Shown here: piece after piece, positions 3,906-55,177 of the stretch
How the letters are laid out: the number at the start of each line of letters is the position of its first letter
Numbering within the stretch: position 1 is the first letter of the stretch
Assembly: GCA_030704615.1 (NCBI GenBank)
Contig: CM060733.1
Span: 60,140,001-60,204,000, forward strand
Direction: 5' to 3'
DNA length: 64,000 bases
From: Takakia lepidozioides
Taxonomy: Eukaryota; Plantae; Bryophyta
Position numbers and translations under genes: made by a program
The notes under the pieces: generated by a model
What the model was told of the DNA's origin: nothing
Databases searched by the model: none
What the model saw: the letters and a program-made list of their open reading frames with translations, nothing else

Positions 3906-4550
3906 TGTCACGGACATAGCCCAGATGCATTTACCAGGAGTAAATACCAAAAATTGCCAAGTTACAATGTTACCAAAAGTCACCATAATTTATCATAATT
4001 TATCATATTCTACCATGATTTACCATTAGTTACCATTAGTTACCAAGTTGCCGGGAGTTTATCAAATTACTGAGAGTAACTTGGGAAACTGCTCAGGAAA
4101 CTTCATTTGGAGGAAACTTCTTCATCAAGATACCTCCTTTGTTTAATGAAACTTCTCCATCAAGAAACCTCCAATGACAAAGCTTCCTAGGGAACTTCCT
4201 AATAGCTAGTATATATAGGATGCGAGACTGGACACTCTTCAGTCTTGCCAACACAAATTCAAGCTACTCTTGTTTCCAGTCCCAGTACTCCAGTTCAGCT
4301 TCCAGTACTCTAGCCCAGTTTCCAGTAACTGACACTCTAGTCCAGTTTCCAGTTTCTGACACTCTAGTCCAGTTTCCAGCATTCCAGTATTCAAGTCGAG
4401 TTCCAGTATCTTGTACTCTTGCCCATTGTTATAACGATTATCTTTATTCTTGTTTACCCATCATGCATTCGACCACGCCGACCTTGACTTCTTGTCTAGT
4501 CTTGTACATCTAGTCTGATCTCTTGTTTGTGTTCATTCTCGTCCTTGACA
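3906..4550 (+). repeat. 5' LTR of the chromovirus
   Basis: TGTCA...TGACA termini, TATA-like TATATATA at about 4211, and strong similarity to 25497-26132. Confidence 0.9.
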
Positions 4551-7176: not shown

Positions 7177-7467
7177 CTAAGGCTCCATAACTTTCAGCAA
7201 CTTTAGACTCCAAAGCGTTGTCCGGCCAACCACCTGCCCCAATTCAGTATGTTTCGTCACACCATTCACATATGGTAGAGGAGTGTTACTCACACTTGCC
7301 TCTTTGATGTACACACAGGCATAGTCAAGGGGCACAGCAGGGTACCCGTAACCCACCACAACACCTTGAAGAGCAACAATCAGCCCTACTCCAACTTTCT
7401 TGTGTTTGGAGTTCACATCCAGCAGCCGAACCGCGTCACCCACTCTGAACTGTGATCCCAACTCCAC
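7177..7467 (-). CDS. CACTA TnpA-like C-terminal exon (Tnp1/En/Spm-type domain)
   Basis: FRVGDAVRLLD...VGVGLIV...VPLDYACVYIKE....PLPY...LGQVVGRTTLW matches the TnpA C-terminal domain pattern. Confidence 0.65.
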   Translation of the reverse strand: MELGSQFRVGDAVRLLDVNSKHKKVGVGLIVALQGVVVGYGYPAVPLDYACVYIKEASVSNTPLPYVNGVTKHTELGQVVGRTTLWSLKLLKVMEP

Positions 7468-7959
7468 ACAAAAACAACAAGTTGTGAAAACCCATGGCCT
7501 GCACCACTACGACACTCAACATTTAGGAATTAAAGAGAGCCCCGAGGTTGGAAAAAAATGAAACAGACAAGAGGAGGGCCTGGACTTACTCCATTTGCAG
7601 TCTCGAGTGGTTGTGAGACCTCCTTTGGGGGCCTACTTGGCAGGTCGATAGTCTTGCCCCTAGCCTTTATTGGGTTGTCGACAATGCCACATTTCTTTGT
7701 CACAAGTTCGAGTGTCATAGACCAGAAAACAACAGTGTATTAGTGAAGCCTCAAGGAAGAGTGAACAAAAAACAAAACCCAAGCGTGAATCAAACGAGAA
7801 AACCTAGCATGAAGACCTACAAAGACAACCTAGCATTAATGAAGCAACTGAGGAGAAGCATCCAGAAAAGCAATGCAATGAAGGAACCCACAAATGTTCA
7901 AGCCTCACAAGTTTAGCGTCAGAATGTTTAGGGAATGTTTGTACCTTCTCAGTAGGACA

Positions 7960-8760
7960 TGAAGCAGAGTTGTATGGTTGTTGTCTCAAAATAGGCTGAG
8001 ACTCCAAAAAAGCTGGAATACTGGCAACTTTTGATGCCTTCCACAAGAAAGACCACAACATATTTGTTAGATAATCATCACATGGCAAATCTGGTTGCAC
8101 TTTCCATGGCGCTGGGAAGATCCCACTGAATGGAGGATTGTTTGCCGCCTTTTGTGGTGTATCGTCAACAAGAACAGTGTCCTCATGACTCCATTTTGGC
8201 CACTCTGCCCACACTCTAGACAAGTTCTTGTAGAACAACGGTTTTGAATCATACCCCTTACGAGATGGGAGGACTGGATCCTCGTCACAGTGAAGGGCAT
8301 CCCACTGGAAAACAAGGTTAGTGTGGGCTGCAAAAATATAGTCCACTATTGGGAAGAAGTTGCGAGCTTGGCAACAAGACCACACCGCCACCTCAAAGTG
8401 TTCAAAGCACTTTTGCAAAAACTCAGAACGTCGTTGTCTCAAAACTACCATCTTCTTGCCACACATCTTTCCCACAAAACCTTTGGGAAGGGATGCAATG
8501 ACTGTAGCAGAATAAAATGATTCACATAGCAAACCGCTTAAGTCCAGAATTAGCAAATGCTTCCTCGCTGGTCCAGGAAGCAAACTGTCATCTGGCTTCA
8601 CCATGTGAGCGGGAGAAAGTATAGCAACATCCTTGTCTGTTTTGTCACGGTCTGCATCTGCATCTTCCTCCCCATGTAAACTCCCATAGACCAACATACC
8701 AGAATCTGGTGTGCCAGAATCTTCTGTCACCATTGCCCCCTGGACTGCCAGAATCTTCAT
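7960..8760 (-). CDS. FCP1/SCP (NIF, HAD-superfamily) phosphatase-like domain inside the CACTA element
   Basis: KHLLILDLSGLL, VVLRQRRSEFLQKCFEHFEVAVWS, LVFQWD...C, LFYKNLSRVW, DTVLVDDTPQKAANNPPFSGIFP. The reading frame is open across the whole domain. Confidence 0.85.
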
Positions 8761-9631
8761 TTGTCACCATTGCCCCCTGGACTGCTACTTCATTTGTATG
8801 TCGCTTGGGCTGACCTCCCACATCTACCTCACAGCTAGCCTTCCCTGCATCTTGCTACTGCTCGGACAAATTCAAACCATCAGCAGTGAGGGCAATACAT
8901 GAGGGCTTAGAGTGAGCCCCAGTTACCGTCTGAAATTGCTCTTCCAAACATTTTGATACTGTCACACCAGAAGCAGCCGACGTAGATGTCATTGGGCCTG
9001 GGCCAGGTAGAGTAATCCCTAATCGTGCTACAATGGCTTTATGGTAATCAATCATGCTCTGCATCTGCAATTTTAAATCTGACATGTCGCATCTTTGTGA
9101 TTCCACCAGTTTGTCCAAGCCCTCCATCATGCCAACTACAAAGCATATGCCCGACTCTCTTCCTGCCAATCCATGAAAACAAAGTTGAATCAAACCAAAA
9201 ACACCTAGCATGAACAACTGGAAAGAATATACTCATAAGACGTTGTTTGCTGTAGCCTTGTGGCCATTGACCTTGCGCCCAGTTTGAGCGAAACAATGAT
9301 GTCCTCTCTCATGTCACAGACTGGAAACAAGTGAAGGGAAGTTTTCTACCTAAAAACTGGAAAGAAAACCTAACAAGAATCAAGATGAAGCAACCAGGAA
9401 AGTAAACGTGGAAAATTGAATTACCCGCATTTCGCTCCCACCTGACATCCGCGACACTGAACCCTCTTGAATTTCATGTAATGTAGGAAGGCACCCTGAT
9501 AGTGCTTCCTGCAATTTATTTAACCCATGCCACAAACAAACACTCCCACAAGTCGATAACCAATATGAGGGCACACTATATACACATAGTGTTTCAATGA
9601 GGAACGAAATACAGAGTAGTGATGATGCCAC

Positions 9632-9976
9632 TTACCAAGCGTGCCTCCACCATTGCCTTCCCACCACGGCCAGTTTTGGTAGGATTTTGGATTGCACCAT
9701 TTGCTTTCTCATATGGCCCGACACTTTCTGGAACACCTCTATCTGCCAATAACTTACAAGCTTGTTCCATGTGTCGTCAGATACAGTAATGGGTTTCCCC
9801 TTGCCACTCAACCACGCAGTATGTGAATCAAAGCGCTGGCTCTTCATTATGCGACCAATTGTTTCTTTTAGGTGGCGGTCAGTCAATTGCTTTGGCGTAT
9901 ATGAAAATAGCTTAGCCAGGTGATCTCCGATTTTGTGTACAAGTTCATCAGGTTGGTTGTTGATGGGAAGGAACAA
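9632..9976 (-). CDS. CACTA TnpA-like exon (Ptta/En/Spm Transposase_24-like)
   Basis: GKPITVSDDTWNKLVSYW...KVSGHMRK pattern, followed by a GTAAGT splice donor at about 9635. Confidence 0.6.
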   Translation of the reverse strand: MFLPINNQPDELVHKIGDHLAKLFSYTPKQLTDRHLKETIGRIMKSQRFDSHTAWLSGKGKPITVSDDTWNKLVSYWQIEVFQKVSGHMRKQMVQSKILPKLAVVGRQWWRHAW

Positions 9977-18587: not shown

Positions 18588-18938
18588 GTAAGGTAACTAG
18601 CTAACATGAATACGGGAAGGAATACAAATAGGAAACACCCCCATGATACACTAGCTGTAGGTCATGACTGATTGTTCTGAGCGGGCTGAGTGCTTAGAGA
18701 TTTCCAACTCTTCTATCTTGGAGTTCCCACCTCGGATAGCGAAGGGATGGGTGAGTAAAAGCCGCGCGACACAACTCGAGAAAGATGAGCCCACCGCGAT
18801 CTGCCGTGAAGATAACAACGTCAGGTGCCCAAACATGTATTAGCCCCTGGATTGACACTTGGGTCAATCCCAAATGTCAATATGTAAAAGCTAGCTATTT
18901 CCTAGCTAACTTCACACTAATGGTAAAATAACTTGACA
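18588..18938. mobile_element. Probable terminal fragment of a further LTR, ending TGACA against the chromovirus integrase
   Basis: Abrupt ...CTTGACA|GACCTTACGG junction into the RPYGLLQPL integrase sequence. No partner copy in the window. Confidence 0.35.
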
Positions 18939-19816
18939 GACCTTACGGTCTTCTTCAACCATTATCCATTCCCAAGGGTCCATGGTCGTTTGTGTCTATG
19001 GACTTTATTGCGGACCTTCCAATTTCCAAGACCACCGATTCAATCCTTGTTATTGTGGATCGTTTTACGAAGATGACACATTTCATTCCATGTAATAAGA
19101 TGGTTACAGGCGAGGAAACTGCAAGACTCTTCCTCAACAATATCTACCGCATTCATGGATTCCCGAATGACATCGTATCTGATCGAGGACCACGGTTCAT
19201 ATCAAATTTCTGGAGGGGATTATTTCACATATTGGATATTAAGATCAACATCTCTACAGCTAATCATCCACAGACTGATGGTCAAACCGAGCGCGTAAAT
19301 CAGATTTTGGAGCAATATCTTCGTTGTACGATAAATTATCACCAAGATAATTGGACGGACTTTCTGCCATTCGCTGAGTTTGCCTACAACACTATACATT
19401 CTTCGACCAAACAAACTCCATGTTTCTCCAATTATGGTCATCATCCTTAAGCAAATCCTTTCTACATGAAGACTGTTGGAAGCCCTTCTATAGAAAACCT
19501 TGCTACGATTCACATGTAGCTTACATTCCACCTCGCAGGAGCTCAAAAATGGTACAAGGAGTATGCAGATCAACATCGCCAACTCCAACCGCAGTTCAAG
19601 GTCGGAGATCGTGTATGGCTTCTTCGACAGAACATACAAACCTCGCGACTATCAAGGAAGTTGGATTATCAACGCCCGGGATCATTCAAAATTATTCGAT
19701 AAATAAATCCGGTCAGTTTTCGGCTTGAACTTCCACGAAGTATACCCATCCACCCAATCTTCCATGTCTCATTATTAGAGTTGTATCATCACTCAAGTAT
19801 TCCCGGACGAGTTTCT
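18939..19816 (+). pseudogene. pol: Integrase core of the chromovirus
   Basis: PYGLLQPLSIP.GPW..VSMDFIADLP, VDRFTKMTHF, IVSDRGPRF, HPQTDGQTERVNQ, and [11 protein letters not shown]. Confidence 0.95.
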
Positions 19817-22800
19817 CCTAGGGGTGCACTCTTTATAAAATGTCTGTATTACGTGCGTTCGCCGCCTAATAAAAAACCCCCCTGTATACGGGTCCTTGGA
19901 TCATTTATACCCCCTCTGTACATACATTTTGAAGATTATAAATCCCTCTCATGTAAATATATAGAAAGTTGTAATTTTTAAGAAGTAACCCCTTCTGTAT
20001 GTATATTTCCCTTTTCAATCATTAAAAAATATCCTCAAATATGTATATGTATGTTTTTATATTATATCAAGTTTATTAATTTAAAAATAGAATAAAATCT
20101 AATAAATTAATTAAAAAAATCTATTTGCCCTCGATAAAACTTGCTGTGGAATCACACTTTGAACAATAGTCAGATGCAGAGAGGAAAGAGACATTGTCAA
20201 TGCCCGATGTGCAAGAGGCCTGAAGAAAGTTTCCATTTTCTGATGTACAGTCCTAATTATTTTCATCAAAGAGTAACCCTCTTGAAGACCATCAAGACCT
20301 TAGTCACAACACCTCTGCTCATCAATTAGGACAGTTTCTGAACTTGTTCTACATTTCACCTTCGCAAGGTCCAATTATGTTCAAAACCAATTATTGAGAA
20401 TTCCTCTCCAAAAAGAGATTTCGTGTGCCTTTGCTGCCACTGTTGGAGTCCAACCTGACTCGCAACTGACAGAAACTGCTCAATACATTCAATTAGGTGA
20501 CAAGCATTTCATTTCACCAATACTCCCCACAAAAACAAACACCATTTTGGAAGTGGTGAAAGCGGTTGACATCTCGTACAACAATCTCTTGCTTAGCTAT
20601 CTTTGAGATGAATTTGGTGGCTGTGTGGCAATCACCACACATCCGAAGATTCTTGATGATCCCCAAAAACATCCCAGAGGGTGTGTTGATAAGCCCAAAA
20701 ACAATGGCCAACTTCTCATTGTGGTGGCAAAGAGACGATTCTTTAAGCTCTTCCTCAACATCATGCAATGCAAAGCGCGGGCTTCACCCCTTCGCACATC
20801 AATTGCTCATAGGTCTCTAAAGCCTCCATCCCACGCCCTTGCTGTGCATATCCTGCAATCATCGCACTCCACGACAACACATCTCGTTCAGCCATACTGT
20901 CGAACACTCCCTTCATACATGTCCATGAGGGTATTGTTCAGAATGACATTTGATACAATTGCAGATCTGACAATGTCGCCATGGACCTCTTTGCCCTTTT
21001 CCAGAGCTGACAGGCTTGCACACGCATTGCAAATGCACACAAACGTGATGTGGTCGGCTTCACCCCTTCCCCCATCATTTGATCATAGGTCTCCAAAGCC
21101 TCCATACCACGTCCCTGTTGTGCATACCCTGCAAGCATCACACTCCATGACACCACATCTCGTTCAGCCATGGAAACTCCCTTCGCATCCTTAATGCACC
21201 CACATTTGGCATACATGTCCACCAAGGGAGTGTTCAGAATGACATCTGGTACAATTCTAGCTTTGACAATGTCACCATGGACCTCTTTCCCTTTTCCAGA
21301 GCTCCCAGGCTTGCACACACATTGCATCTTGCCAACATTATATTCCACGTGATCAAAGATCGTTGATGCATTTTGTTGAACACTTGGTGAGCGTCAATGA
21401 TGCTCCCACACAAAACATACATGTTGACAAGGGTGTTGAGCATAAAACATTTGACGTGAATCCACTTTGGATAATGTGAGTATGCACCTGTTTTCCAGCT
21501 TCCAGACCTTCCATCTTGATGCACTTAAGCAAGAGACAGACATACATATCTAAATATGGTGAAATGCCTTGTGATGTGGTTAGGCTTTACCCCTTCCCCC
21601 ATCATTTGCTCATAGGTCTCCAAAGCCTCCATCCCGTGCCCCTGTTGTGCAGCGTCACGTTCCACGACACCATATCTCGTTCAGCCAGAGTGTTGAAAAC
21701 TCCCCTCACATCCTTAACGCACCCACATTTGGCAAACATGTCCACAAGGGCAGTGTTCAAGATGACATCTGGTACAATTCCAGCTTGCTCCTAGGCTTGC
21801 ACACGCATTGCAAACACAAACAAATGTGATGTGGTTGGGCTTCATCGCTTCGCACATCATTTGCTCATATGTCTCCAAAACATTCCTACCACACCTATGC
21901 TTGGTAAATCCTTTCAACATAATATTCCACGTGATCAAAGATCATTGAGGCATTCTGTTGAACACTTGGCGAGCAACCCCGATGTTCCGACACTTAACAT
22001 ACAAGTTGACAAGGGTGTTGAGTAGAAAAATATTTGGCGTGAATCCACTTTGGATAATGTGAGTGTGCACCTGCTTTGCAACTTGGAGACCTTCTATCTT
22101 GATGCACTTAAGCAAGAGACAGAAATACATATCTGAATCTGCTGAACTACCTCCTTGGAGTAGAGTCTGTAGAGCCTCCGTCAGGCTGTCGCACAAAGTA
22201 TCTTCACATGCCCAGAAGTGCCAGAAGAGGCATTGTGGACTCCCTTTCTTGATCCTCTTTCAGAAGCTGTGGTCATGGTTGAGGTGCCTGATTTTATCAA
22301 CTGTGCCGCTGCAGCTGCTGCCTTTAGTTGACCATCTACCCATGCAAGTTTCTTATAGCTACTGACCCCCACATGGAATCAAGGTAATATGGAGCTTGAA
22401 GTCCAACCCTCTTGGATGAATCTGGACCCACACTCTATCCATGCTCATTCAGGGAAAAACAGGGAAAAACTCTGAGAACAGGGGAAAACAGGTTGAAATG
22501 TGATGAAGAAGGTACCTTCATTAGCAGCGCTTTGTTCTAACCAATTCACTGCTGCCACTGCTGTTTCCAGTTGACCATCTACCCACGCAGCTTTCTTGTA
22601 GCTATTGATCCGCAAGGAATCAGAAGTATTCTTGTGTTTAAAATCCGACCTCTAGGATGAATGTCTTCCACTTCACCACATCGTTCAGCCATAGTGTTGA
22701 ACACTCTCTCCGCATCCTCAATGCTCCTACAATAGCATACATGTCCACAAGGGTATTGTTCAGAATCACATATGGTACAATTCCAGCTTTGGTGATGCAA

Positions 22801-24689
22801 CCATGCACCTCTTTGCCCTTTTCCAGGGCTGCAGGCTTGCACACGCACTGCAAACGCACACAAACATGATGTGGTCGAGCTTCACCCCTTCCCCCATCAT
22901 CCGCTTTCAGGTCTACAAAGCCCCATCCCGCGCTCCTGCTCTGCACACCCTGCAAGCATCGTGTTCCATGACACCACATCTCATTCAGCCATAGTGTTGA
23001 ACACTCCCTTGGCATCCTCAATGCTCCCACATTTGGCATACATGGCCACCAGAGTAATGTTCAGGATGACATCTGGTACAAATTGCAGATTTGATGATGT
23101 CACCAGGGATCTCTTTGCCCTTTTCCAGGGCTGCCATACGCACTGCAAATGCACACAAACGTTATGTCGGCGGCCTTCACCCCTTCCCCCATCATTTGCT
23201 CAAAGGTTGGAGCCTCCATCCCGCACCCCTGTTGTGCATACCCTGCAAGCATCACACTCCACAACACACATCTCGTTCAGCCATAGAGTTGAACACTGAT
23301 CCCTTGGCATCCTCGATGCACCCATATTTGGCATACATGTCCACCAGGGCAGGGGCAGTGTTCAGAATGACATCTGGTAATCTAATAGGCATTCACATTT
23401 TTGCATCGATCGTCCCACCATTGTCTGGGGTCAGAAAAATATTCATTCCACTGCTTCTCCTCGTCTCTGTTACCTGTTTCTGGATACTTTCCTGTTGTCA
23501 CATTGGCAGTATCATGTCAAAGTCATTCCAACCTATCCTAGATTCACTCAACCAGCTAACTTGCAGAATTCAACATGAAAATTTAGGGCTGATTCTGATA
23601 AGAGGGGAAACAGGGTGAAATGTGTTGAAGAAGGTGCCTTCATCAGCACTGCCTCATTTTATCAATTGTGCCGCTGCTGCTGTGGCTTCATGTTGATTAT
23701 CTACCCATGCAGGTTTCTTGTATCTACCCTCCATAGGGAATCGTAGGTAATCTGGAGCTTGAAATATGGAGCTTGTCCTTGACTTTGTGTCATGACCTAT
23801 GGAGGATTTGACCGACCATCAACCCAAAATGACCTCTTGTGTGTGCTGATTGTGTCTTGTAGTCAGATAATGTCGGATTGGTCTGTGAGAACCACCACGG
23901 TGCAACTAAGCAGGTAGAGAAACACGGTCTGCTAAGACAAAGCTGACTCTCCCAAGAACCTTGTAAACATCAAGAAGAATACCAAATCAGGGTACTAACA
24001 GGAGGCAAGAGCCCGCATTTGCAGGATGGACAAACTTCTTCACATCGTACCTTAAGAAAACGCCACACCTTGCGATTGCAGTTGTCCCATCATCGTGAAG
24101 GATTTGCTCCGTGCTGCAAATTCAAGGCCGAGTCTGATGAGAGGGAAAAACAGGCTGAAATAGGTCGAAGAAGAAGGTGCCCTCACCATATTGTCCTTGA
24201 CATTGTGTCATGACCCATGGAGGATTTGACCTCCCAAAAAGACCTCTTTTCTGTGTGCTGTTGGTGTTTGTACTCAAGTAATGTCAGGTTGAGAACCACC
24301 ATGGTGCAGCTGAGCAGACAAAGATTGAAATGACGTGCTAAGACCAAGTTGATTATCCCAAGAATGCGGGAGATGAGGGGAGGGGAGAGGAGAGGCGAGG
24401 AGAGGAGGGGAGGAAGAAGAGAGCCCGCGGGAGGGAATGGGAGAAAGATCGCGGGAAAAAAGAAAGAAAAAAGAAACAAAACGAATGATCCCGCGGTGTA
24501 TCACGACCTAAATAACGTCCTTACCACTAGACTATCCCTTAAAACTTAACAACCCCCTCTTGTAATATTATATTTAAGGTGTTTTAAACCCCCCCTATGT
24601 ATGTGTAATGTTGTACATGGGGGGGTTAATATACCCCCTCCTGTGCACGCACGTGGCTGGTACATACTGGCTAGAGTGCACCCCCCAGG
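19817..24689. mobile_element. Non-autonomous TIR DNA transposon (Pack-type, 8-bp TSD) carrying PPR-DYW gene fragments
   Basis: Termini CCTAGGGGTGCACTCT / AGAGTGCACCCCCCAGG. Exact TSD GAGTTTCT at 19809-19816 and 24690-24697. Removing it restores the integrase frame IPGRVS|VLPPPIEV. CCCCC(T)CTGT-type subterminal motifs occur at both ends. Confidence 0.9.
20514..23380 (-). pseudogene. Mosaic of PLS-class PPR fragments ending in a DYW deaminase domain (C-terminus EYW)
   Basis: DYW domain [13 protein letters not shown]...[18 protein letters not shown]...[16 protein letters not shown] (20514-20768). PLS motifs include GKEVHGDIVKARIVPDVILNTPLVDMYAKCG, ERDVVSWSVMLAGYAQQG and LLNTLVNLYVKC. Many frameshifts and deletions. 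Confidence 0.92.
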
Positions 24690-24910
24690 GAGTTTCTGTA
24701 CTACCTCCACCGATTGAAGTCAATCAGGAAATTTGACGAAGTCCTAGATTCTCGCATCAAGTATAAACGTATTTCGTACATTGGGAAATGCTACGGACGT
24801 GAGAACCTTCATCCAACCTCGCCAATGCATCTGACAAAATCCAAGAGTTTCATCAACGATATCCAGGTAAGCCCCGAGCTATACGTCAATAAGACGTCAC
24901 AACGATGATG
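24690..24910 (+). pseudogene. Integrase C-terminal chromodomain remnant
   Basis: VLPPPIEV...FDEVLDSRIKYKRISYIGK.YG..ENL. Confidence 0.7.
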
Positions 24911-25496: not shown

Positions 25497-26132
25497 TGTT
25501 ATGAACACAGAACAGAGGAACTTACCAGGAGTAAATACCAGAAGTTACCAAGTTACGATGTTACCAAAAGTCACCATGATTTATCATAAGTTACCATAAG
25601 TTACCATAAGTTACCAAGTTACTGGGAGTTTATCAAATTACCGAGAGTAACTTGGGAAACTGTTCAGGAACCTTCATTTGGAGGAAACTTCTCCATCAAG
25701 ATATCTCCTTTGTTTAATGAAACTTCTCCGCGAAGAAACCTTTGTTAAAAGAAACTTCTCCATCAAGAAACCTCCATTGGGGAAGCTTCTTAAAGAACTT
25801 CCTAGTAGCTAGTATGTATAGGAGGCGAGACTGGACACTCCTTAGTCTCGCCAACACAAGTTCAAGCTACTTTTGTTTCCAGTCCCAGTACTCCAGTTCA
25901 GCTTCCAGTACTCTAGCCCAGTTTCCAGTATATGACACTCTAGTCCAGTTTTCAGCATTCCAGTATTCAAGTCGAATTCCAGTATCTTGTACTCTTGCCC
26001 ATTGTTATAAAAATCATCTTTATTCTTGTTTACCCATCATGCATTTGACCACGCCGACGTTGACTTCTTGTCTAGTCTTGTACTTCTAGTCTGATCTCTT
26101 GTTTGTGTTCAGTCATGTTCTCGTCTTTGACA
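25497..26132 (+). repeat. 3' LTR of the chromovirus
   Basis: Follows the PPT, has TG...TGACA termini and is similar to 3906-4550. Confidence 0.9.
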
Positions 26133-39101: not shown

Positions 39102-41161
39102 TATATAGTAAAAGTACTAAAAGGCAAGTCTTATTGATTGCTTTAAGCCTAGCTAGAACTATATAAGAGCTGGGGGTGAAGCCACAGATCAATTGTTCAC
39201 GCTGTGTGCCTCTATGGTTGGGTGGAGAGCTTCTATACAATCCTTTTCTGTTGTTCTATCTACGTTTTCAACAAGATAGACCTCTCAACTTCGGATAGGG
39301 ATTATATTGGTGCCGATAAGCTAGCTGTACCATATTGGGAGCAACATGCCAACGTGGATCAAGATGCTGGCAGAGCACAACGCTCCCAATGGAGTTGACC
39401 TGAGGCTTGTACCTGTGGTCAAAAGGAGCATGTATCCCCATTTTGTTGAAAGGAGAGCTGGCAGCAAGCCTGTGATGGTCACCCGGTGATCCTTACGTTT
39501 CTCGAGCGACCTTTTCCCTGAAGCGTGCTCTTGCCCTGGCAGAAATCTCACAAGTTGTCACTTATCATAAGCTGGGGTCACTACGCAAGTTTCCGTTGCT
39601 ACACAATCGACTACACCGTTCTACCGGATTGAGGGAACTGCTAAGATTGCACAACCTAGATCCCGTCCACTGTGTACTTCAAGCGGAGCATGCACAATGG
39701 GAATTTGCGCGAGACAAGAACTTGATCGCCCCAGATAAGAGATTTAGAAACAGAGACAACGTTTTTGCAGATGAAGACCTGTAGAGCTACATTGCTATGG
39801 AATGTATACGAGAGGTTCACAAACAGGTATGGAGTCCGATGTAACTAATTGAAACCATGACGATAACTTATCCACCTCCTCTCTTATGGCTCTTTTCCCT
39901 TAACGTAATACATATGTGAGACTTACATGTACATAGCTCTGAAAGAATATGAAGGAAGGAGCTCTGTAAGTACCAAAAAGAGAAAGAAACGTTATCATAT
40001 CCACGGAAATCCGAAAGCACTTGCTTGTGCGTAAGAGAGAAACGAAATGACGTGAAATGGAACTTTATACCGTCCCCAGAAAGCTCAAAGTGCTAATGGA
40101 CAAAAGGAAAGCAAGAAGCAAGAACGAAAAAAGACAAGAGTGCGAAGCCAGAAGCAGCCCAAAAGCAACTACTGCTCAAGAGATTGTCTAGGGTTCAAAG
40201 CTTCTGCTGAGAGAAAAAGTTCGGGGAAAATGTTAGACTGGGCTATCAAAGAACATCTCCATAGATGTTTGTTATGCCGGGGTTTTTCGTCGGAATGACT
40301 TCAAGCAATGCAAGTACATGAGAGGGAAGGGGACTCTACATTACTGAGTGCATGTGAACGTTGGCTATGGGGTTGTCAGTCCCCACTAGACACTAATCAT
40401 AATATCATAGTGTCCTAAGAGACATTCATGGTCATGTCATCATTGGAGCTTATCCTGTAGGTGATCCACTGCACATTCAAGCTAATAGCTATGTGAATCT
40501 AAAACTCTATTTTCAAGATTATGGATCCTGCAGGACTTCCCACAGTGGACAACAAGGTTGGTTGAGCTGCCCTTCCCACTACTTACAGGTACATGTGTTT
40601 ATAGAAAGCTGCAAATTTATTTCTCTCATCTACAGGGCTAACAACAAGTAGGTTTCAGTGAGGTCCGGGGCCCTTCCTGGCTGTTACAAGTTAGTTGGAG
40701 ACATACTAGTCATAAGAAAGGTAAAGGCACTTATTGAGACTTTAGTCAGGTTGCTTAAGACATGTATCATCATGTAATTGCTCATAGGAGAGCCCATATG
40801 CATAATCAGCTCTATCAATTGGTCTAAGGCAATATTTGCCAGGTATAACTTTTGGAGTACAAGTAAAGGCAGCTACTTGCTCTGCTTCTGATGATCCAAT
40901 TGATTTACAGGCTGGCACATTGTGGAAATCCAACTATGGATCTGTCACCAATGTCAATCCTGGTCGTGGCCGCTTTCCAACACACCTGGGGGGGGGGGGG
41001 GGGAGTTCGTAGATGTATTTTACCTTGTAAGATTATTGAATCTCAGGATATCACCACTAGATATTGATCAAGCTTCAATCAATTTTAAGCTCAAAAGTTT
41101 ATCCTGGCACACAGAACTGTGCCTTCAAAATAAGGGCTCCAGCTCTGTCGTATACCTTTGC

Positions 41162-43300
41162 TCATGGTGGACATGGGCGAGTTATCATCCAGTAGGCACG
41201 CCGATTGCATGAATGCTCAGCATCTGGAGAATTAAGTAGCACAGGAACCCTGTGTGAAAATCTGGAAACCTCCTCCGGAGGAAGCCAGATGGATGGGGAG
41301 TCTTCCTTTGTCCACAAATTTGTATAACCATCCTCCTTCACTAAAGGAGCTGTAATGATTCCTGTGCACTCACAGTACTCGCTTAAGACTTCCGCCAGGT
41401 TGTAACTAGGAGCTGGTTTCTTCAAGTTGAAGTCCTCTTCCTCAGAGTGAACCAACTTTTCCCAGTCACCATATAAGGCCCAGACCTCTCCTTTTCTAGG
41501 GTAAATCTCATATATCCCTCCAGTCTGGACCTCCTCTTGCATTAAGTGGGACAACATTTCCATCTGTACAGCTAGAACAACATGCTCTGTACTCACAAAT
41601 TGTCCGCAAGTCAGTGGGAGCGTTGTGGCTGGCTGAAGTGTAGGTAACCCTGTCGAAGGATGATATGGCGTCAACCAGCTGACCCAAGTCGTAGTAGGAG
41701 TATCTAAAATGCGCACAATGAGAGCATATGCACGGGCAATCCCATTCTGGTCATTAATCATTGCCCAAATTTGGCCAGGTGATAGAGGGGGAAGAGCAGC
41801 AGACGTTGGTGTCACCCTGCTGCAAGTCTCTCTCGGGCTCCCTTGGGTTTCCGTTTGCACCCTCCCTTGAGGAGTTTCCTCTATAGGAGCTGTCACTGAA
41901 TAGTACTGTCCCGGTTTTTGTTTGGATAAGAGTGCGTGTTTAGAAAGCTCATCGTCGGAGTACCCCTCTGATGAGACACCATTACTATGGCCACCAGCAG
42001 ACCTCACATCCTGATGATCATTCTTCTGGACGCTATTCATTGATATGTCCCAACCATCGCTCCTCGCGTTACTCTCTGCAGGGTGCCAAAAACTTATTCC
42101 ATTTGATTTGGTGGACTTCTGTAACTGGTACGTTCCTCCTCATTGGACTCTTCGGGATCACTGATGCTGTCTGTTGGCCTGCAGTTTCGTCCTCTACCCT
42201 CAGTACTTTCTGGTGCAGGCCCCATCTTGGCTGAAGAGGCATTCTCTCTTCAGTGTGGACGTGGCCCGCATTAGAAACATCATCTGCATTGATATCGGTC
42301 ACATCATTAGGCAGACACTCCTCTTGAGTTGGGGTGCACACAGGGTCGAGCTCCCAACAGCCCTCCGGCACACCGACCCACTCCTTGCCGCTCATTTGAT
42401 GGGCAGGTATTTGATAAGAAAATGCATGGAGGTCTGGACGTCGCAGGCAAGTTGGTGAACCGATCCCTGCAATGTTCCACAAGTTCTCGAAACCTCCCAC
42501 CTTGACTAAAGGCCAAATAAGAACGCCATCTTTCTCACAGAAATCGGTTATGACTGCTACAACGTCATATTTATGATGTATAAGCTCAGGCCCCTCCTGT
42601 TGTGAATGTGGCCAGTGGTGATAGAAATCCTCCAGGTCGTGTGTATGCAGTAGCCCTCCTCTTTCTAGGGGCGTGGGCCACTCATCTGATGGCATTCACA
42701 GCCCACACTTCTCCTGCACGAGGGTAGATGTCAACTGGCCCCTTCTTCCCGGTGTCGACTTGCAGTTGGTGAGAGAACATTGTGGCGTTGTCATATGCGG
42801 CATCGGTGCCGCATTTGAACTTGCCACAAGTGATGGGAAAGCCCGTTTTATATCGAAAGAATGATGCATCTTCCGATGCAGCATGAGGTCTTTGCCATTT
42901 GATCCAGACCTTAAACGCAGGAACATGGGAGATCTTCATAATTCTCACATAGATGCGGGGTTTCGCATCTATCTCGTCAGACAGCGCCCAAATTTGCTTG
43001 GGCTTGAATGTACTTAGCCGACGGTGAGCGGCAAAATCATATAAAGTTATTTTGTCGTGCTGCCTGCTCGGGTTCTCAAGAGGAGTAGGAGTCCTGGGGA
43101 GATGAGAAAAGCCACAGCCTTCGTCTCTCTCCTCTCTATGTGTACTCCTGCAAGCTACCGCCAGGCCGCCATCACACATGTCATCCTCCCGGCGCAAATT
43201 TCTTGTGGCACTCCGGAGGTCAAAGGAAGCCTCATTCAGTCACTGCATATCGTTGGCACATGTTTCCTCTTCGCCCCCACTCCACTGATCATCGGCTCAT
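41162..43300 (-). pseudogene. Double-DUF3444 protein gene, copy A (frameshifted)
   Basis: FKPKQIWALSDEIDAKPRIYVRI, DIYPRAGEVWA, YDVVAV, CWELDP; second domain PGQIWA...EIYPRKGEVWALY...RFSHRVP. Split into three ORFs by short deletions relative to copy B. Confidence 0.8.
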
Positions 43301-44704: not shown

Positions 44705-45205
44705 TGTAATGGCCAGATTCCTTCCATCTACCTTTTTGTCATTGGATGAACAGACGATTGGATGATGACCGTTGAAAAAGGGTTTGGATGAAACAGCTGG
44801 AGACAATCTATTTCTAAACTAAGTATTGTCTTTTGTTAACAGCTAGTTTATCTCTAAATTAGAATGAGGTGGCGTCCTATCTGGACAGACACCTGGATGG
44901 CATTCAGGTGACCAATCAAGGCATGTCATTTGGTCAGATAAGATTGTGGGCCTTCGTTTATAAAAAGGATTAACACGACGCTTAAGGCAGCGGTGTACGT
45001 TTGGTGTGAAACCCTATTGTACATGTGTGTGAGTTTTGGATGAAAGGGCCGTGAATAAGGATGTGTTGTTAGGTTGGGTGAGTGATTCTGTCTCCTCTGC
45101 GTTGGATCCTGCCTATCTCGCTAGCCTGCTTTACCGAGCATACATTCCCCTTATAGCTCGATACCCCGAGAGGAAGAGGAATAACGGGGTGGGCGAGAAT
45201 CTTGG
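44705..45205 (+). repeat. 5' LTR (last ~7 nt missing at the PBS junction)
   Basis: Matches 52191-52686 but lacks the terminal CTTTACA. Confidence 0.88.
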
Positions 45206-47617: not shown

Positions 47618-50600
47618 ACACCCTGCACATGATGATTCCATTGTTTCTGTTATGTTGTCCAATGAATTCCAGATGATGCATTGTGAAGCCAATAGGAAGC
47701 TTAGGAAGGAGAGAGTGCACCCTCTCATGACTCAATGTCACATATGGCACCTCTCATTTTCATGTGTTGTTGACACAGGCTGTACCATGTCTGCTGTTCC
47801 ATTGTCCGTGGTTCGATTACTTGGTCTCAAGCTCACTCCAACCAAGGGTCTGCAGGTGACCATTGCAGATGGCACACGTTATGAGCCTCTAGGTTTGGTC
47901 ACCGTTCCCATCAAAGTCAGTTGCAAGTCGGTCACACTGACTTGTATTGTCACCATTGGTGAACAGTTGCTGTTAGGCTTGGATTGGATGTGTGCTGCAG
48001 GGGCAAAAATTGATGTGGTTGAAAACGTCATGTGGCTTGCTAGTGGCAGCTCCTCCCCCCACAAGGTGCAGCTCAACTCTGTCTCCCTGCCTGCTGGTTG
48101 TGCCACTGCACACCTTTCCCACATGCGCACCCTTGTTGCTGAAACCAAGCGGCAGGTGGGTGAGCAATACAACTGGACACGTTACTTTAACTTTGCCAAG
48201 ACGGCTCCCCTCACCCTGTATCAATGGCAGCCCCCTTTGCCTGGTAAGAAGAGTGGCCCTCCCATTCTGATCCCAGGTAACACCACTCTTCTTCGCAATC
48301 CCGCTGACTTTGTCATACCTGCCTCCTCCCAAAAAATTGTCTCTCTTGGCCTCACCTTTCTTTGTCCACAAGGTCATTATCTTGAAGTTGAGGGGTGGAA
48401 ACGTTTGATGCTTTCCAAACATTGTTTGATTGCATCTGGAGTGCTAGATCGGGGCTTTCGAGGGGAGCTTCGACTTCTTGTTGCCAACCCAAAACGCATT
48501 CCTATCACCGTCCGCAAGGGTCAGGTCCTCGCTCGACTCACTGCCACTCCCTTGACAGATTTAGGAAAGGTGCAACATGCTTTAAGTTTTGTTGACATTG
48601 GCCTGTCAGATGATCCTATTGATCAATTGCATCTCTTAGCCCAATCTGTCGCTACACCCCAGATTTGTCCCCTCACTCCTGCGCAATCTGGCATCTTAAT
48701 CAAGTTCTGACTAATGTCAAAATAGGCTCTGGTCTCACTGACATTGAGAGGTCTCTATATCATATCATTCGTGACAATCTGGATGTTTTCAGTGCTGGTT
48801 CTCATGATTTGGGACGTACCGAGGTCCTCCACCATGACATTGTCATTTATGGTAGCCCTGTCAAACAGTATGCTTATAGAGAGAGTGTCAAAGAACGTGA
48901 AATTATGCAACTCGAACTGACCAAGATGTTGGATGCAGGTGTTATTAAACCCTCTATTTCCCCCTGGGCCAGTCCCATCGTCTTGGTTGCCAAAAAGGAT
49001 GGTACCACTCGTTTCTGCGTTGATATTTGACGGCTCAATGCCCTTACTAAGAAAGATGTATATCCTTTACCTCGCATTAATGATACTTTGGATCAACTCA
49101 ATGGTGCCACTCTCTTCTCTTCCTTGGACCTTGCTGCGGATTTTTGGCAAGTCCCCCTCACAGAGTCAGCCAAGGAAATTTAGACTGCGTTTACCTGTAA
49201 GATGGGTCTCTTTCAGTTTGAAACCATGCCTTTTGGATTATGTAATGCCACAGCCACCTTTCAACGCCTCATGGATGTTGTTCTAGGCAACTTGCGCTGG
49301 GAATGTGCCTTGGTCTATGTTGATGACATCAACGTTTACTCCGCTGACTTTGATTCTCACATGTTGGATCTGAAGCGCGTTTTGTGCAGGCTTAGAGGTG
49401 CAGCTCTCAAAGTGAAAGCCAAGAAATGTGACTTATGCATGACGGAGCTTCACTTTCTTGGCCACCTTCTCTCAGCCCAAGGCAGTAGCCCTGACCCTGC
49501 CAAAATTCAGGTTGTCTGGAACTATCCTACTCCACGTGACAAAAATTGTGTCCGTGCTTTTCTTGGGTTGGCCTCTTACTATCGTCGTTTCATTAAACAT
49601 TTTGCTCACATTGTTGCTGCGCTTAATCAGTTATTATGCAAATATGTTCGCTTTCTTTGGGGTAAGTCCCAAATCACTGCTTTTGATAAACTCAAAATTG
49701 CCCTCACCAGTGCACCCATTCTAGTCTTTCCTGATTTCTCCCTTCCTTTTATTCTTCAGACTGATGCCTCTGACCTGGCTGTTTCAGCTATTCTATGCCA
49801 AAAGAGAAATGGCAGGGAACATGTTGTGGCCTATGCTTCCAGGCAGCTTGACAAACATGAGAAGAACTATAGTATTACTGATAAATAAAGACTTACTGTT
49901 ATTTTTGGGGTCAAACATTTTCGGCAGTATCTACATGGCTGCCCCTTTGTTATTCAGACTGATTATCTTCCATTGAAGGCTCTAAAAACCCCACGGGCAC
50001 TCTCGGGACGCTTGGCTCGCTGGTCACTTACTCTTCAGATGTTTGAGTATGACATTGAGTATAAGAAGCAAAGCCAACAGCAATGCTGACGCTCTCACAC
50101 GCACGGAGACTAAGTCTTCTGACCCTTATATCACCTTAGATGACCTTGCACACTGCTCACCATCTGGTGCTTCACCCTTCCCCTCTTCTTCTCCTGAAGG
50201 ATCCAATTTACTTGCCTTGTTTGCCTCTGTTCCTGTTCTTCCACCTGATCTCATGTCTGAATGGGATTTACTATCATTTTCTGCTGGATGAAGTTGATTT
50301 AGAGTGTTGTAATGTCACTGTGGTCATATTCTAGGTATGATATCACTCTCTCTTCTATGATTGCGTTGTCCCTTTCTGCTTCCAGTTATGGTTTTGGCAC
50401 TGAATCCTCTCCATAGGGAAATCTGCTTTTGTGCTTCATTGTCCTTGGTTGCATCTTCATGAAGTCCCCCTTGTCATTCAGTTGAGTTGGCAGCCATTCC
50501 CTGGAGATAACTGAGGCGGACACTCCGATAGGCTCACACTAACCCAAGGGTTGGCTATGGCAGCTGCACTCATGGAGGACCATCTTCATCAAGCCCTCCG

Positions 50601-52190: not shown

Positions 52191-52693
52191 TGTAATGGCC
52201 AGATTCATTCCACCTACCTTTTTGTCATTGGATGAACAGACGATTGGATGATGACCGTTGAAAAAGGGTTTGGATGAAACAGCTGGAGACAATCTATTTC
52301 TAAACTAAGTATTGTCTTTTGTTAACAGCTAGTTTATCTCTAAATTAGAATGAGGTGGCGTCCTATCTGGACAGACACCCCCATGGCATTCAGGTGACCA
52401 ATCAAGGCATGCCACTTGGTCAGATAAGATTGTGTCGTTTATAAAAAGGATCAACATGACGCTTAAGGCGGCGGTGTACGTTTGGTGTGAAACCCTATTG
52501 TACCTGTGTGTGAGTTTTGGATGAAAGGGTCGGGAATAAGGATGTGCTGTTAGGTTGGGTGAGTGATTCTGTCTCCTCTGCGTTGGATCCTGCCTATCTG
52601 GCTAGCCTGCTTTACCCAGCATACATGCCCCTTATAGCTCGATACCCCGAGATGAAGTGGAATAACGGGGTGGGCGAGAATCTTGGCTTTACA
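52191..52693 (+). repeat. 3' LTR
   Basis: TGTAATGGCC...GGCTTTACA. Confidence 0.92.
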
Positions 52694-53122
52694 GCCCTCT
52701 TCATCAAATTAGAAGCCGAGGAAAAAATAACCTCGTTGGGGCCCTAAGGCATTACAATCTTAGTAACCTCCATCACCGCAATGGGGAGCAAAGATCACCA
52801 ACCATAGTTCACTGACTCTGAAAAACCAGCTGCTAAGAACCAGGGTACCAAGGGACAGACAGGGAATAAATCTAAGAACACAGTCTGCCATCTATTGCAC
52901 ATTGAGCAGAAGGGCAAAACCTGCCAAGTAACAGAAGCAAAGAAAAAAGCAAGCAGGGAAACTATCTCTTGGATCTGAGAGCCTCGAAGTTCAGATGAGC
53001 TTCTTGGAGTTTCTGTTCTTTCTATGTTTCCAGTTGATGTCGTCTTCGAATTGCAGGGGGGAGGGCCAGGGGCTAGAGGGACCACCATTGATCGGGGATG
53101 GCACACTAATCATGTGCTTTGT

Positions 53123-55177
53123 TCATGCTGGACATGGGCGAGCTATCGTCCAGTAAGCACGCTGATTGCATGAATGCTGTGCATCTGGAGAATTGAGTAG
53201 CACAGGAACCGTGTGTGAAAATCTGGAAACCTCCTCGGGAGGTAGCCAGATCGATGGGGAGTCTTCCTTTGTCCCCAAATTTGTATAACCATCCTCCTTC
53301 ACTAAAGGAGCTGTAATGATTCCTGTGCACTCACAGTACTCGCTTAAGACTTCCGCCAGGTTGTAACTAGGAGCTGGTTTCTTCAAGTTGAAGTCCTCTT
53401 CCTCAGAATGAACCAACTTTTCCCAGTCACCATACAAGGCCCAGACCTCTCCTTTTCTAGGGTAAATCTCATATATCCCTTCAGTCTCCTCCTCCTGTAT
53501 TAAGTGGGACAACATTTCCATCTGGACTAGAACAACATGCTCTGTACACACAAATTGTCCGCAAGTCAGTGGGAGCGTTGTGGCTGGCTGAAGTGTAGGT
53601 AACCCTGTCGAAGGATGATGTGGCCTCAACCAGCTGACCGAAACCGTAGTAGGAGTATCTAAAATGCGCACAATGAGAGCATATGCACGGGCAATCCCAT
53701 TCTGGTCATTAACCAATGCCCAAATTTGGCCAGGTGATACAGGGGGAATAGCAGCAGACGCTGGTGTCACCCCGCTGAAACTCTCTCTCCAGCGCCCTTG
53801 CTGCAGTCTCCCTTGAGGAATTTCCACTGGAGCCTGGGATGTCACTGAATAGTATTGTCCCGGTTTTTGTAACTTCGACGATAAGAGTGCGTGTTTAGAC
53901 AGCTCATCGTCGGAGTACCCCTCTGATGAGGCACCCTGACTATGGCCACCAGAAGACCTCCCATCATGATCATTCTTGCGGACGCTATTCAATGCTGTGT
54001 CACAACTATCGGTCCTCACGTTACTCTTTGCAGGTTGCCAAAAACTCATTCCATTTGATTGGGTTTTACATGGACTTCTGTAACTGGGAAGTTCCTCCTC
54101 AATGGACTCGTCGTGATTACTGATGCTGTCTGTTGGCCTGCAGTTTCGTCCTCTGCCCTGAGTACTTTCTGCTGCAGACCCCATCTTGGCTGAAGGGGCC
54201 TTCTTGCACGATACTTTTGAGAACTCTTCAGTATGGACCTGGCCCGCATAATTAGAAACATCATCTGCATTGATATTGGTCACATCATTAGCCAGGCACT
54301 CCTCTTGCGTTGGGGTGCACGCAGGGTCGAGCTCCCAACAGTCCTCAGGCACACCAACCCACTCCTTGCAGCTCATTTGATAGGCAGGCATCTGATAAGA
54401 AAATGCATGAAGTTCTTGAGGTCGCACCCAAGTTGATGAGCTAATCGCTGCAATCTGGGACCACAAGTTCTCGAACCCTCGCACCTTGACTAGAGGCCAA
54501 ATAAGAACGCCAAATTCCTCACAGAAATCTGTTTTGACGGCTACAACGTCATATTTATGATGTATAAGCTCGGTCTCCTCCGGTTGTGAATGTGGCCAAT
54601 GGTGATAGAAATCCTCCAGGTCGTGTGTATGCAGCAGCCCTCCTCTTTCAAAGGACGTGGGCCTCTCGATCCGATGGCATTCCCAGTCTCTTTTGACAGC
54701 CCACACTTCTCCTGCACGAGGGTAGATGTCAACTGGCCCCTTCTTCTCGGTATCCACTTGCAGTTGGTGAGAGAACATTCTTGCGTTGTCAAATCTTGCA
54801 TTCGTGCCACATTTAAAACGGCCACAAGGGATGGACAACCCGGTTTGATACCTAAACAGCCAAGCTTCTTCCGATGGATCATGAGGTTTTTGCCATCTGA
54901 TCCAAACCTGGAGCTTAGGAACATGGGAAATCTTCATGATTCGAACATAAATCCGAGGCATTCCATCCTTTTCATCATACAACGCCCAAATTTGTTTGGG
55001 CTTGAAAGAACTTTCCTGCCGGTCAGCTGCAAAATCATGGAAACAGATGTTATCCTCCCCGCGCAATTCTCTTGTGGTGCGGACGTCAAAGGAAGCCTCA
55101 TTCAAGTTACTGCATATCGTTGGCACATGTTCGCCGTCGCCCACATTCCCGCAGCAGCTGTTGGTATCGACCGACAA
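53123..55177 (-). CDS. Double-DUF3444 protein gene, copy B (open 684-aa ORF; possible upstream exon at about 55470-55680)
   Basis: FHDFAADRQESSFKPKQIWALYDEKDGMPRIYVRI...CWELDP, then a second PGQIWA...YPRKGEVWALY...RFSH domain. Paralogous to 41162-43300. Confidence 0.82.
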   Translation of the reverse strand: MSVDTNSCCGNVGDGEHVPTICSNLNEASFDVRTTRELRGEDNICFHDFAADRQESSFKPKQIWALYDEKDGMPRIYVRIMKISHVPKLQVWIRWQKPHDPSEEAWLFRYQTGLSIPCGRFKCGTNARFDNARMFSHQLQVDTEKKGPVDIYPRAGEVWAVKRDWECHRIERPTSFERGGLLHTHDLEDFYHHWPHSQPEETELIHHKYDVVAVKTDFCEEFGVLIWPLVKVRGFENLWSQIAAISSSTWVRPQELHAFSYQMPAYQMSCKEWVGVPEDCWELDPACTPTQEECLANDVTNINADDVSNYAGQVHTEEFSKVSCKKAPSAKMGSAAESTQGRGRNCRPTDSISNHDESIEEELPSYRSPCKTQSNGMSFWQPAKSNVRTDSCDTALNSVRKNDHDGRSSGGHSQGASSEGYSDDELSKHALLSSKLQKPGQYYSVTSQAPVEIPQGRLQQGRWRESFSGVTPASAAIPPVSPGQIWALVNDQNGIARAYALIVRILDTPTTVSVSWLRPHHPSTGLPTLQPATTLPLTCGQFVCTEHVVLVQMEMLSHLIQEEETEGIYEIYPRKGEVWALYGDWEKLVHSEEEDFNLKKPAPSYNLAEVLSEYCECTGIITAPLVKEDGYTNLGTKEDSPSIWLPPEEVSRFSHTVPVLLNSPDAQHSCNQRAYWTIARPCPA

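Follow-up and report, generated by a model that had tools for sequence, protein, structure and literature searches.

How do several kilobases of gene sequence for an RNA-editing factor come to lie in the middle of a retrotransposon integrase? This question is raised by a 64,000-nucleotide stretch of the genome of the bryophyte Takakia lepidozioides (assembly GCA_030704615.1, contig CM060733.1, positions 60,140,001 to 60,204,000 of the forward strand; hereafter the window, in whose coordinates all positions are given). Within it, a 4,873-bp insert at 19817-24689 interrupts the integrase of a Ty3/gypsy element and carries sequence of the pentatricopeptide repeat (PPR) family whose members end in a DYW deaminase domain. 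Our answer is that the insert is very probably a non-autonomous Class II transposon of the Pack type, that is, a cut-and-paste element with terminal inverted repeats (TIRs), that moved together with its cargo. Elements of this kind, which capture genes, are already known, but the cargo is unusual. A first-pass annotation of this DNA had already claimed that the PPR sequence arrived as transposon cargo, and our analysis supports the claim: a TIR element lacking a transposase was inserted as one unit.

The insert and its target site

The boundaries of the insert were read directly from the sequence, and the integrase flanks on either side of it were read separately, by reference. The features that define the insertion are the following:

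18932-19816, plus strand: host integrase core and SH3 domain of a decayed Ty3/gypsy element, broken after ...IPGRVS (Pfam)
18932-19447, plus strand: rve, the integrase core (Pfam)
19520-19816, plus strand: SH3_Tf2-1 (Pfam)
19809-19816: left copy of the target-site duplication (TSD), GAGTTTCT, identical to 24690-24697
19817-19832, plus strand: left TIR, 16 nt, CCTAGGGGTGCACTCT, with imperfect inverted similarity continuing to ~19858
24673-24689, minus strand: right TIR, 17 nt, AGAGTGCACCCCCCAGG, by direct reading
24690-24697: right copy of the TSD, GAGTTTCT, by direct reading
24698-24905, plus strand: host integrase C-terminus resumed (VLPPPIEV...), followed by a frameshifted chromodomain-like stretch (DEVLDSRIKYKR)

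The 8-bp TSD is exact on both sides, so that the insert stands as the first-pass annotation had described it, with its length, its TIRs of about 16-17 bp and its exact TSD confirmed. The TIRs have in common an inverted core of 12 nt, exactly matched, and CCT/AGG at their outermost positions, and they differ in length by one base. When the first 320 nt of the insert were aligned to the reverse complement of its last 320 nt, weaker inverted similarity appeared further inward (GTMTGTA at 19842-48 / 24667-61, and ACGTGCGT at 19851-58 / 24654-47), fading at ~45 nt. No inner copies of the TIRs were found within the insert, which rules out a composite of two complete small elements, and elsewhere in the window the TIR core was absent except for a one-mismatch 12-mer at 47712, without element features.

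The position of the break in the host is equally precise. On the left flank the integrase frame stops on a codon boundary exactly at 19816; on the right it is taken up again from 24698 as VLPPPIEVNQEI, after which comes a frameshift of the host's own and then DEVLDSRIKYKR in another frame. The first-pass annotation was therefore right that excision of the insert restores IPGRVS|VLPPPIEV. Before the insertion, the host site would have consisted of a single GAGTTTCT between ...GGACGAGTTTCT and GTACTACC.... A second copy of the host retrotransposon, which could have offered a paralogous empty site, was not found within the window.

Could the TIRs and the TSD be chance matches, the segment having arrived through some rearrangement in which no transposase took part? 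We scanned for 12-nt exact inverted pairs at most 20 kb apart with an exact 8-bp direct repeat within 6 nt. The configuration of the insert is the sole match in the real window, while 30 Markov-shuffled windows contained on average 0.13 configurations, a figure that under such a permissive scan leaves some room for coincidence. As this control is modest when taken alone, the case rests on a combination: the outer CCT match, the frame-exact break of the integrase and the repeated termini (see below). Indeed, a fortuitous origin has to face the match of the outermost CCT/AGG and an inverted similarity that reaches ~45 nt, a break that restores the integrase reading frame exactly, and termini that both belong to repeated families in two independent DNA data sets. 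We hold it to be most improbable.

Repeated termini around one transcription unit

Inside the TIRs the insert is divided into two terminal regions of its own and a cargo between them, whose borders are set by the following features:

19817-20087 (271 nt): left transposon-specific terminal region, with C-run + TGTA subterminal motifs at 19877, 19910 and 19989
20088-20513, minus strand: 3' untranslated region (3'UTR)-like tail of the captured gene, with an AT-rich end without poly(A) (RNA-run contigs at 20358-20573, contig of run X5 at 20145-20567)
24370-24480, minus strand: low-complexity tract, CT-rich, that marks the upstream cargo border and the end of RNA-run coverage
24422-24689 (268 nt): right transposon-specific terminal region, with a tRNA-like stretch resembling A- and B-boxes at ~24485-24540, and C-run + TGTA motifs

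The public read data that we used consist of contigs in all runs, and contig depth is unfit as a measure of copy number. Runs X1 and X5 are DNA, the former bearing the label of the same organism and the latter being an independent data set labelled 'plant metagenome'; runs X6 and X7 were guessed to be RNA. In X1, 21 contig variants lie over position 19988, 45 over 24605 and 34 over 24630, and in X5 the termini are covered by 4-6 variants. All of these contigs differ from the present copy in their base at those positions (19988, 24605 and 24630), which means that other copies of both termini exist and that the present copy carries private changes. Since termini of ~270 nt recur in dozens of contig variants from two DNA data sets, the element probably belongs to a repeated family. 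The first-pass annotation had staked its reading on the termini occurring elsewhere in the genome, and in both DNA runs they are indeed repeated. Two metagenome contigs that match the pattern for both ends have nothing else in common with the element and were set aside as chance matches.

The tRNA-like stretch of the right terminus is an observation apart. On the minus strand, 24485-24540 resembles the A- and B-boxes of a tRNA (TAGTCTAGTGG ... GCGGGATCATTCG) and is followed by the CT-rich tract; ARAGORN and Rfam were both negative for a tRNA or short interspersed element (SINE) there. It may be the remnant of a SINE-like head.

Runs X6 and X7 behave very differently from the DNA runs. They cover 20088-24421 continuously, and have zero depth at 19891-20087, at the right terminus and on the high-copy retrotransposon flanks. 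Zero depth on termini and flanks that are high-copy in DNA argues that these two runs are RNA and not genomic DNA, and their restriction to the cargo argues that the latter matches transcribed gene sequence from end to end. The cargo also contains short intron-like spacers (GT..AG and GC..AG), at least one of which is spanned by RNA-run contigs. It spans roughly one transcription unit, from the CT-rich upstream tract to the 3'UTR-like tail.

A cargo whose borders are those of RNA-run coverage is also what one would expect if a PPR-DYW mRNA had been copied back into the genome, the inverted ends being a coincidence. Such a retrocopy would agree with the published model, in which retroposition accounts for the growth of the PPR family in Takakia and in other early land plants (PMC13386178). 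Still, there is no poly(A) or other A-run at the 3' end of the cargo; the cargo is a scrambled array of modules and not the colinear copy of an mRNA; the insert ends in exact inverted repeats, which are found again elsewhere in the genome; and on each side, inside the TSD, lie ~270 nt of non-transcribed repeated sequence. A retrocopy is, in our judgment, very improbable.

Several points weigh against a Pack-type transposon that moved with its cargo. TIRs and TSD by themselves are expected by chance in about one window of ten, as counted by our permissive scan. The ends read CCTAG and CCTGG where a hAT element would have YARNG, so that the first-pass annotation was right about the departure of the CCT terminus from the usual hAT start, and no autonomous partner is known. 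The evidence for a family is the recurrence of the termini, and no complete sister element was retrieved. Lastly, the summed contig depth of the 3'UTR-like part (20285-20481) is lower than that of the left terminus; depth is a poor measure, but this hints at many family members without the PPR cargo.

This last point, by which the termini seem commoner than the adjoining cargo, would also suit a different history, in which a small element of ~540 bp came first and the PPR block was added later by nested insertion, as filler DNA during double-strand-break repair, or by gene conversion from a PPR gene. The terminal regions, short and near-equal in length, would fit such a precursor. A later and independent arrival of the PPR block had been named in the first-pass annotation as what would speak against its reading, the expected trace being a TSD or poly(A) belonging to the block itself. 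At this locus neither is present at the cargo borders. We found no TSD or TIR in the border zones, where the only shared 8-mer is AT-rich and expected by chance, and a nested insertion of the cargo was rejected for want of either. That the cargo was added to a small element in this way seems to us distinctly unlikely, and we retain the Pack-type transposon that carried its cargo to this site.

A scrambled editing-factor pseudogene

About 89% of the insert (~20088-24421, minus strand, ~4.3 kb) is sequence of the PDF-PLS-PPR-DYW editing-factor family. Beyond the tail and the tract already described, it contains:

20514-20783, minus strand: C-terminus of a DYW deaminase, 87-89 residues, with HxE, CxxCH and C.C..YW kept
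20784-22259, minus strand: repeat blocks of PLS-type PPR units, distributed over the three frames
21356-21586 and 21945-22259, minus strand: N-terminal-type PPR segment in two copies, inside the first PPR block
22184-22651, minus strand: second half of a PDF-like motif (DFKHK...AWV), two copies
22640-23392, minus strand: second PPR block, lying between the two halves of the PDF-like motif (a rearrangement)
23385-23516, minus strand: first half of the PDF-like motif (W.EYFSDP.QWWDDR), E=4e-7 against the lycophyte PPR protein P0030
23551-24340, minus strand: further units of the PDF-like motif, arrayed with short intron-like spacers

Pfam places DYW_deaminase (PF14432) at 20514-20768 on the minus strand with E=3e-37, and the stretch 20517-20783 can be aligned with the C-terminal 87 residues of DYW domains of solved structure (52-138 of the 138 residues in chain 7o4e_A, entry 7o4e). 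HNE, which is the HxE motif, and CGDCH align with their counterparts in chain 9kfx_A (entry 9kfx), and the terminal C.C..YW is conserved. As the alignment begins at residue 52 of 7o4e_A, the part of the domain that holds the PG box is missing. The E1 and E2 motifs gave no match in the cargo open reading frames (ORFs), and the DYW piece follows immediately upon the end of a PPR motif (~20779/20780). Upstream, both 20784-22259 and 22640-23392 are filled with PLS-type PPR units that are 76-86% identical among themselves in nucleotide sequence, and 22448-22651, a second half of the PDF-like motif, matches the N-terminus of P0030 (E=7e-5). Among 1.84 billion representatives searched, the full-length proteins that matched best were PPR proteins of the lycophyte Diphasiastrum complanatum, at ~50% identity. 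The N-termini of these relatives carry repeated W..FFSDP.QWWDNR...PDFKHK motifs, pieces of which are found in the cargo. Among short proteins, in a collection without the organism's own sequences, nothing exceeded 70% identity to the DYW ORF.

What these pieces form is not a colinear gene but a scrambled pseudogene mosaic of the PDF-PLS-PPR-DYW family. Across 3.3 kb of the cargo, no open stretch is longer than 151 aa; homologous segments occur in each of the three frames, and a 750-bp PPR block keeps the two halves of the PDF-like motif apart. Chimeric junctions inside the cargo lie at ~20779/80, 21326/33, 22640-60 and 23385/92. Being frameshifted throughout, this copy cannot make an editing factor. 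The first-pass annotation had described the cargo as PLS-PPR repeats with a DYW domain whose HxE and CxxC are intact. This much stands, with the correction that the sequence lies on the minus strand, is frameshifted and rearranged, and lacks E1, E2 and the PG box. To that description have to be added the N-terminal PDF-like motifs and the UTR-like sequence.

It could nonetheless be argued that the editing-factor gene in this element works, or did so until recently, and that the element serves as a vehicle for functional PPR-DYW duplication. HxE and CxxCH, the catalytic motifs, have been preserved, and the cargo extends over an entire transcription unit. A contig from X6, probably an RNA run, matches the DYW piece (20599-20779) at 98.9% identity, from which we conclude that the captured DYW end probably has a very close relative that is expressed, the run type being a guess. 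Yet a functional PLS-E-DYW gene has an uninterrupted ORF, E1/E2 and a complete DYW domain, and here no open stretch exceeds the length given above, E1, E2 and the PG box are absent, and the motif halves are parted by a PPR block. The near-identical contig, too, aligns only up to 20779. Its last 8 letters remain unaligned, exactly where DYW and PPR sequence meet, so that the expressed relative may differ upstream of this point. For the present copy, this reading is already contradicted, and we give it hardly any credence. The first-pass annotation had suggested a route for copying working editing modules, which this copy, a scrambled pseudogene, does not bear out.

A transposase, in turn, has left no trace in the insert: among its ORFs of at least 50 aa, on either strand, no transposase family gave a Pfam match above the curated cut-off, as the first-pass annotation had also held. 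Matches to Transpos_assoc (21356-21586 and 21945-22259; E ~0.01, below cut-off) are probably spurious. The insert thus combines TIRs at both ends, a flanking TSD, no capacity for a transposase and an interior derived from a host gene; conserved and repeated ends with host gene DNA in the middle fit the definition of a Pack-TYPE element.

The PPR part of the insert draws tens of thousands of contigs at 85-99% identity, an abundance that fits a very large and recently expanded family. Debris of this family is also scattered around the element: a short PPR fragment at 1790-1970 on the minus strand, outside the insert, is 84-90% identical to parts of the cargo.

Affinities of the element, its host and its neighbours

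To which superfamily such an element belongs is less straightforward. The 8-bp TSD is that of hAT elements, but the ends lack the YARNG (CA/TA) start of hAT TIRs, and a TAGGGGTG motif is found 2 nt inside the left end only. Because the CCT start stands against a hAT-like TSD and short TIRs, we do not file the element under hAT. The TIRs of Mutator-like elements (MULEs) are long (~100 bp or more) and their TSDs are mostly of 9-10 bp. Rice Pack-MULEs, reportedly described by Jiang and colleagues in 2004, resemble the Takakia element in their capture of gene fragments, in their chimeric cargo of several pieces and in their frequent pseudogene state. The likeness ends at the termini, where the inverted similarity fades after ~45 nt, against ~100 bp or more, and the TSD has 8 bp, against 9-11. 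Pack-CACTA elements are said to have been treated by Catoni and colleagues in 2019; here there are neither CACTA termini nor a 3-bp TSD.

The closest parallel is with the Pack-hAT elements of maize and rice, which have an 8-nt TSD (Gisby and Catoni, 2022; PMC8903248). Like these, the Takakia element is non-autonomous, has TIRs of ~15 nt, an 8-nt TSD, no transposase and conserved termini, and holds host coding DNA inside. It differs in starting with CCT where Pack-hATs start with CA/TA, in having a bryophyte host, outside that survey, and in the size of its cargo, which at ~4.3 kb approaches a complete transcription unit, while in the quoted examples the captured pieces measure tens to hundreds of bp. 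In the acquisition model of the same study, a pair of small elements inserted next to each other is mobilised through the outer TIRs (PMC8903248), and a cargo of one transcription unit between two terminal regions of ~270 nt fits this model. PPR sequence has been found in a DNA transposon before: the grapevine CACTA family Cactavine-5 contains a transduplicated PPR gene fragment (Benjak et al., 2008; PMC2528002). Cactavine-5, however, is of the autonomous CACTA type: it retains its transposase gene, and the PPR piece lies downstream of that gene, whereas the Takakia element has no transposase, an 8-bp TSD and a cargo of the PLS-DYW editing-factor type. Neither the Pack-TYPE survey (PMC8903248) nor a 2026 review mentions PPR genes or bryophytes.

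These comparisons suggest how the element may have come about. The PPR segment would have been acquired at the DNA level, ahead of the present insertion. This may have happened, for instance, through joint use of the outer ends of two small elements lying close together, or through template switching while a gap was repaired, and the high similarity among PPR modules may have favoured the scrambling of the cargo. The TIRs and subterminal motifs that the ~270-nt termini carry would be recognised by a transposase supplied in trans. This enzyme presumably makes 8-bp staggered cuts, as that of hAT does, and the whole unit was inserted into the integrase of a resident Ty3/gypsy element, duplicating 8 bp of the target.

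A model of PPR gene-family expansion by retroposition was reportedly put forward by O'Toole and colleagues in 2008, and the locus has some resemblance to it, as it is a dispersed PPR-DYW duplication located beside or inside long terminal repeat (LTR) elements in an early-diverging land plant. This has to be contrasted with the signs of DNA-level, cut-and-paste movement, namely TIRs, a TSD of fixed length (8 bp) and no poly(A), and with the role of the LTR element, which is here the target and not the vehicle. Hornworts, lycophytes and Takakia have thousands of PPR-DYW editing factors, and retroposition is the sole mechanism proposed in the literature that we found (PMC13386178). That study counts 2,016 PPR genes in Takakia lepidozioides and explains the expansion in early land plants by dispersed duplication through retroposition, giving no DNA-transposon route (PMC13386178). 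Our locus is a clean and well-bounded case in which a TIR transposon moved several kilobases of PPR-DYW gene sequence, and it is further evidence that DNA transposons contribute to the spread of PPR sequence. Copying and reshuffling by such elements could explain part of the abundance of PPR sequences and pseudogenes, and would offer a way to recombine RNA-recognition modules. A much larger claim would be that cut-and-paste transposons of several superfamilies, this 8-bp-TSD family included, were a main vehicle of the recent burst of ~2,000 PPR genes in this moss, and that they also yielded expressed, working editing factors with new specificities by re-assorting modules. We consider this doubtful; if true, a transposon-driven burst would stand beside the published retroposition model or replace it.

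As to the host, it is a decayed Ty3/gypsy element and probably a chromovirus. Pfam detects no chromodomain in this decayed copy. Its own frameshift lies 12 codons past the insertion site (24698-24760), where related contigs read QEIEYEV; in run X5 the loose end of these contigs is the equivalent of QEIEYEV at that very point, which is the usual start of a chromodomain. A direct repeat of ~640 bp (3906-4550 and 25497-26132, 80% identity) was placed as a candidate pair of LTRs of this element. The pair implies an old host of ~22 kb with several nested inserts, including a CACTA TnpA-like gene at 7177-9976. Since the TSD of the insert is perfect while the candidate LTRs are 80% identical, the insert is probably much younger than its retrotransposon host. 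Further along the window, two other pairs of long direct repeats (41156-43040 / 53117-55038, 86%; 44705-45205 / 52191-52686, 95%) probably belong to a further LTR element or to two copies related to each other.

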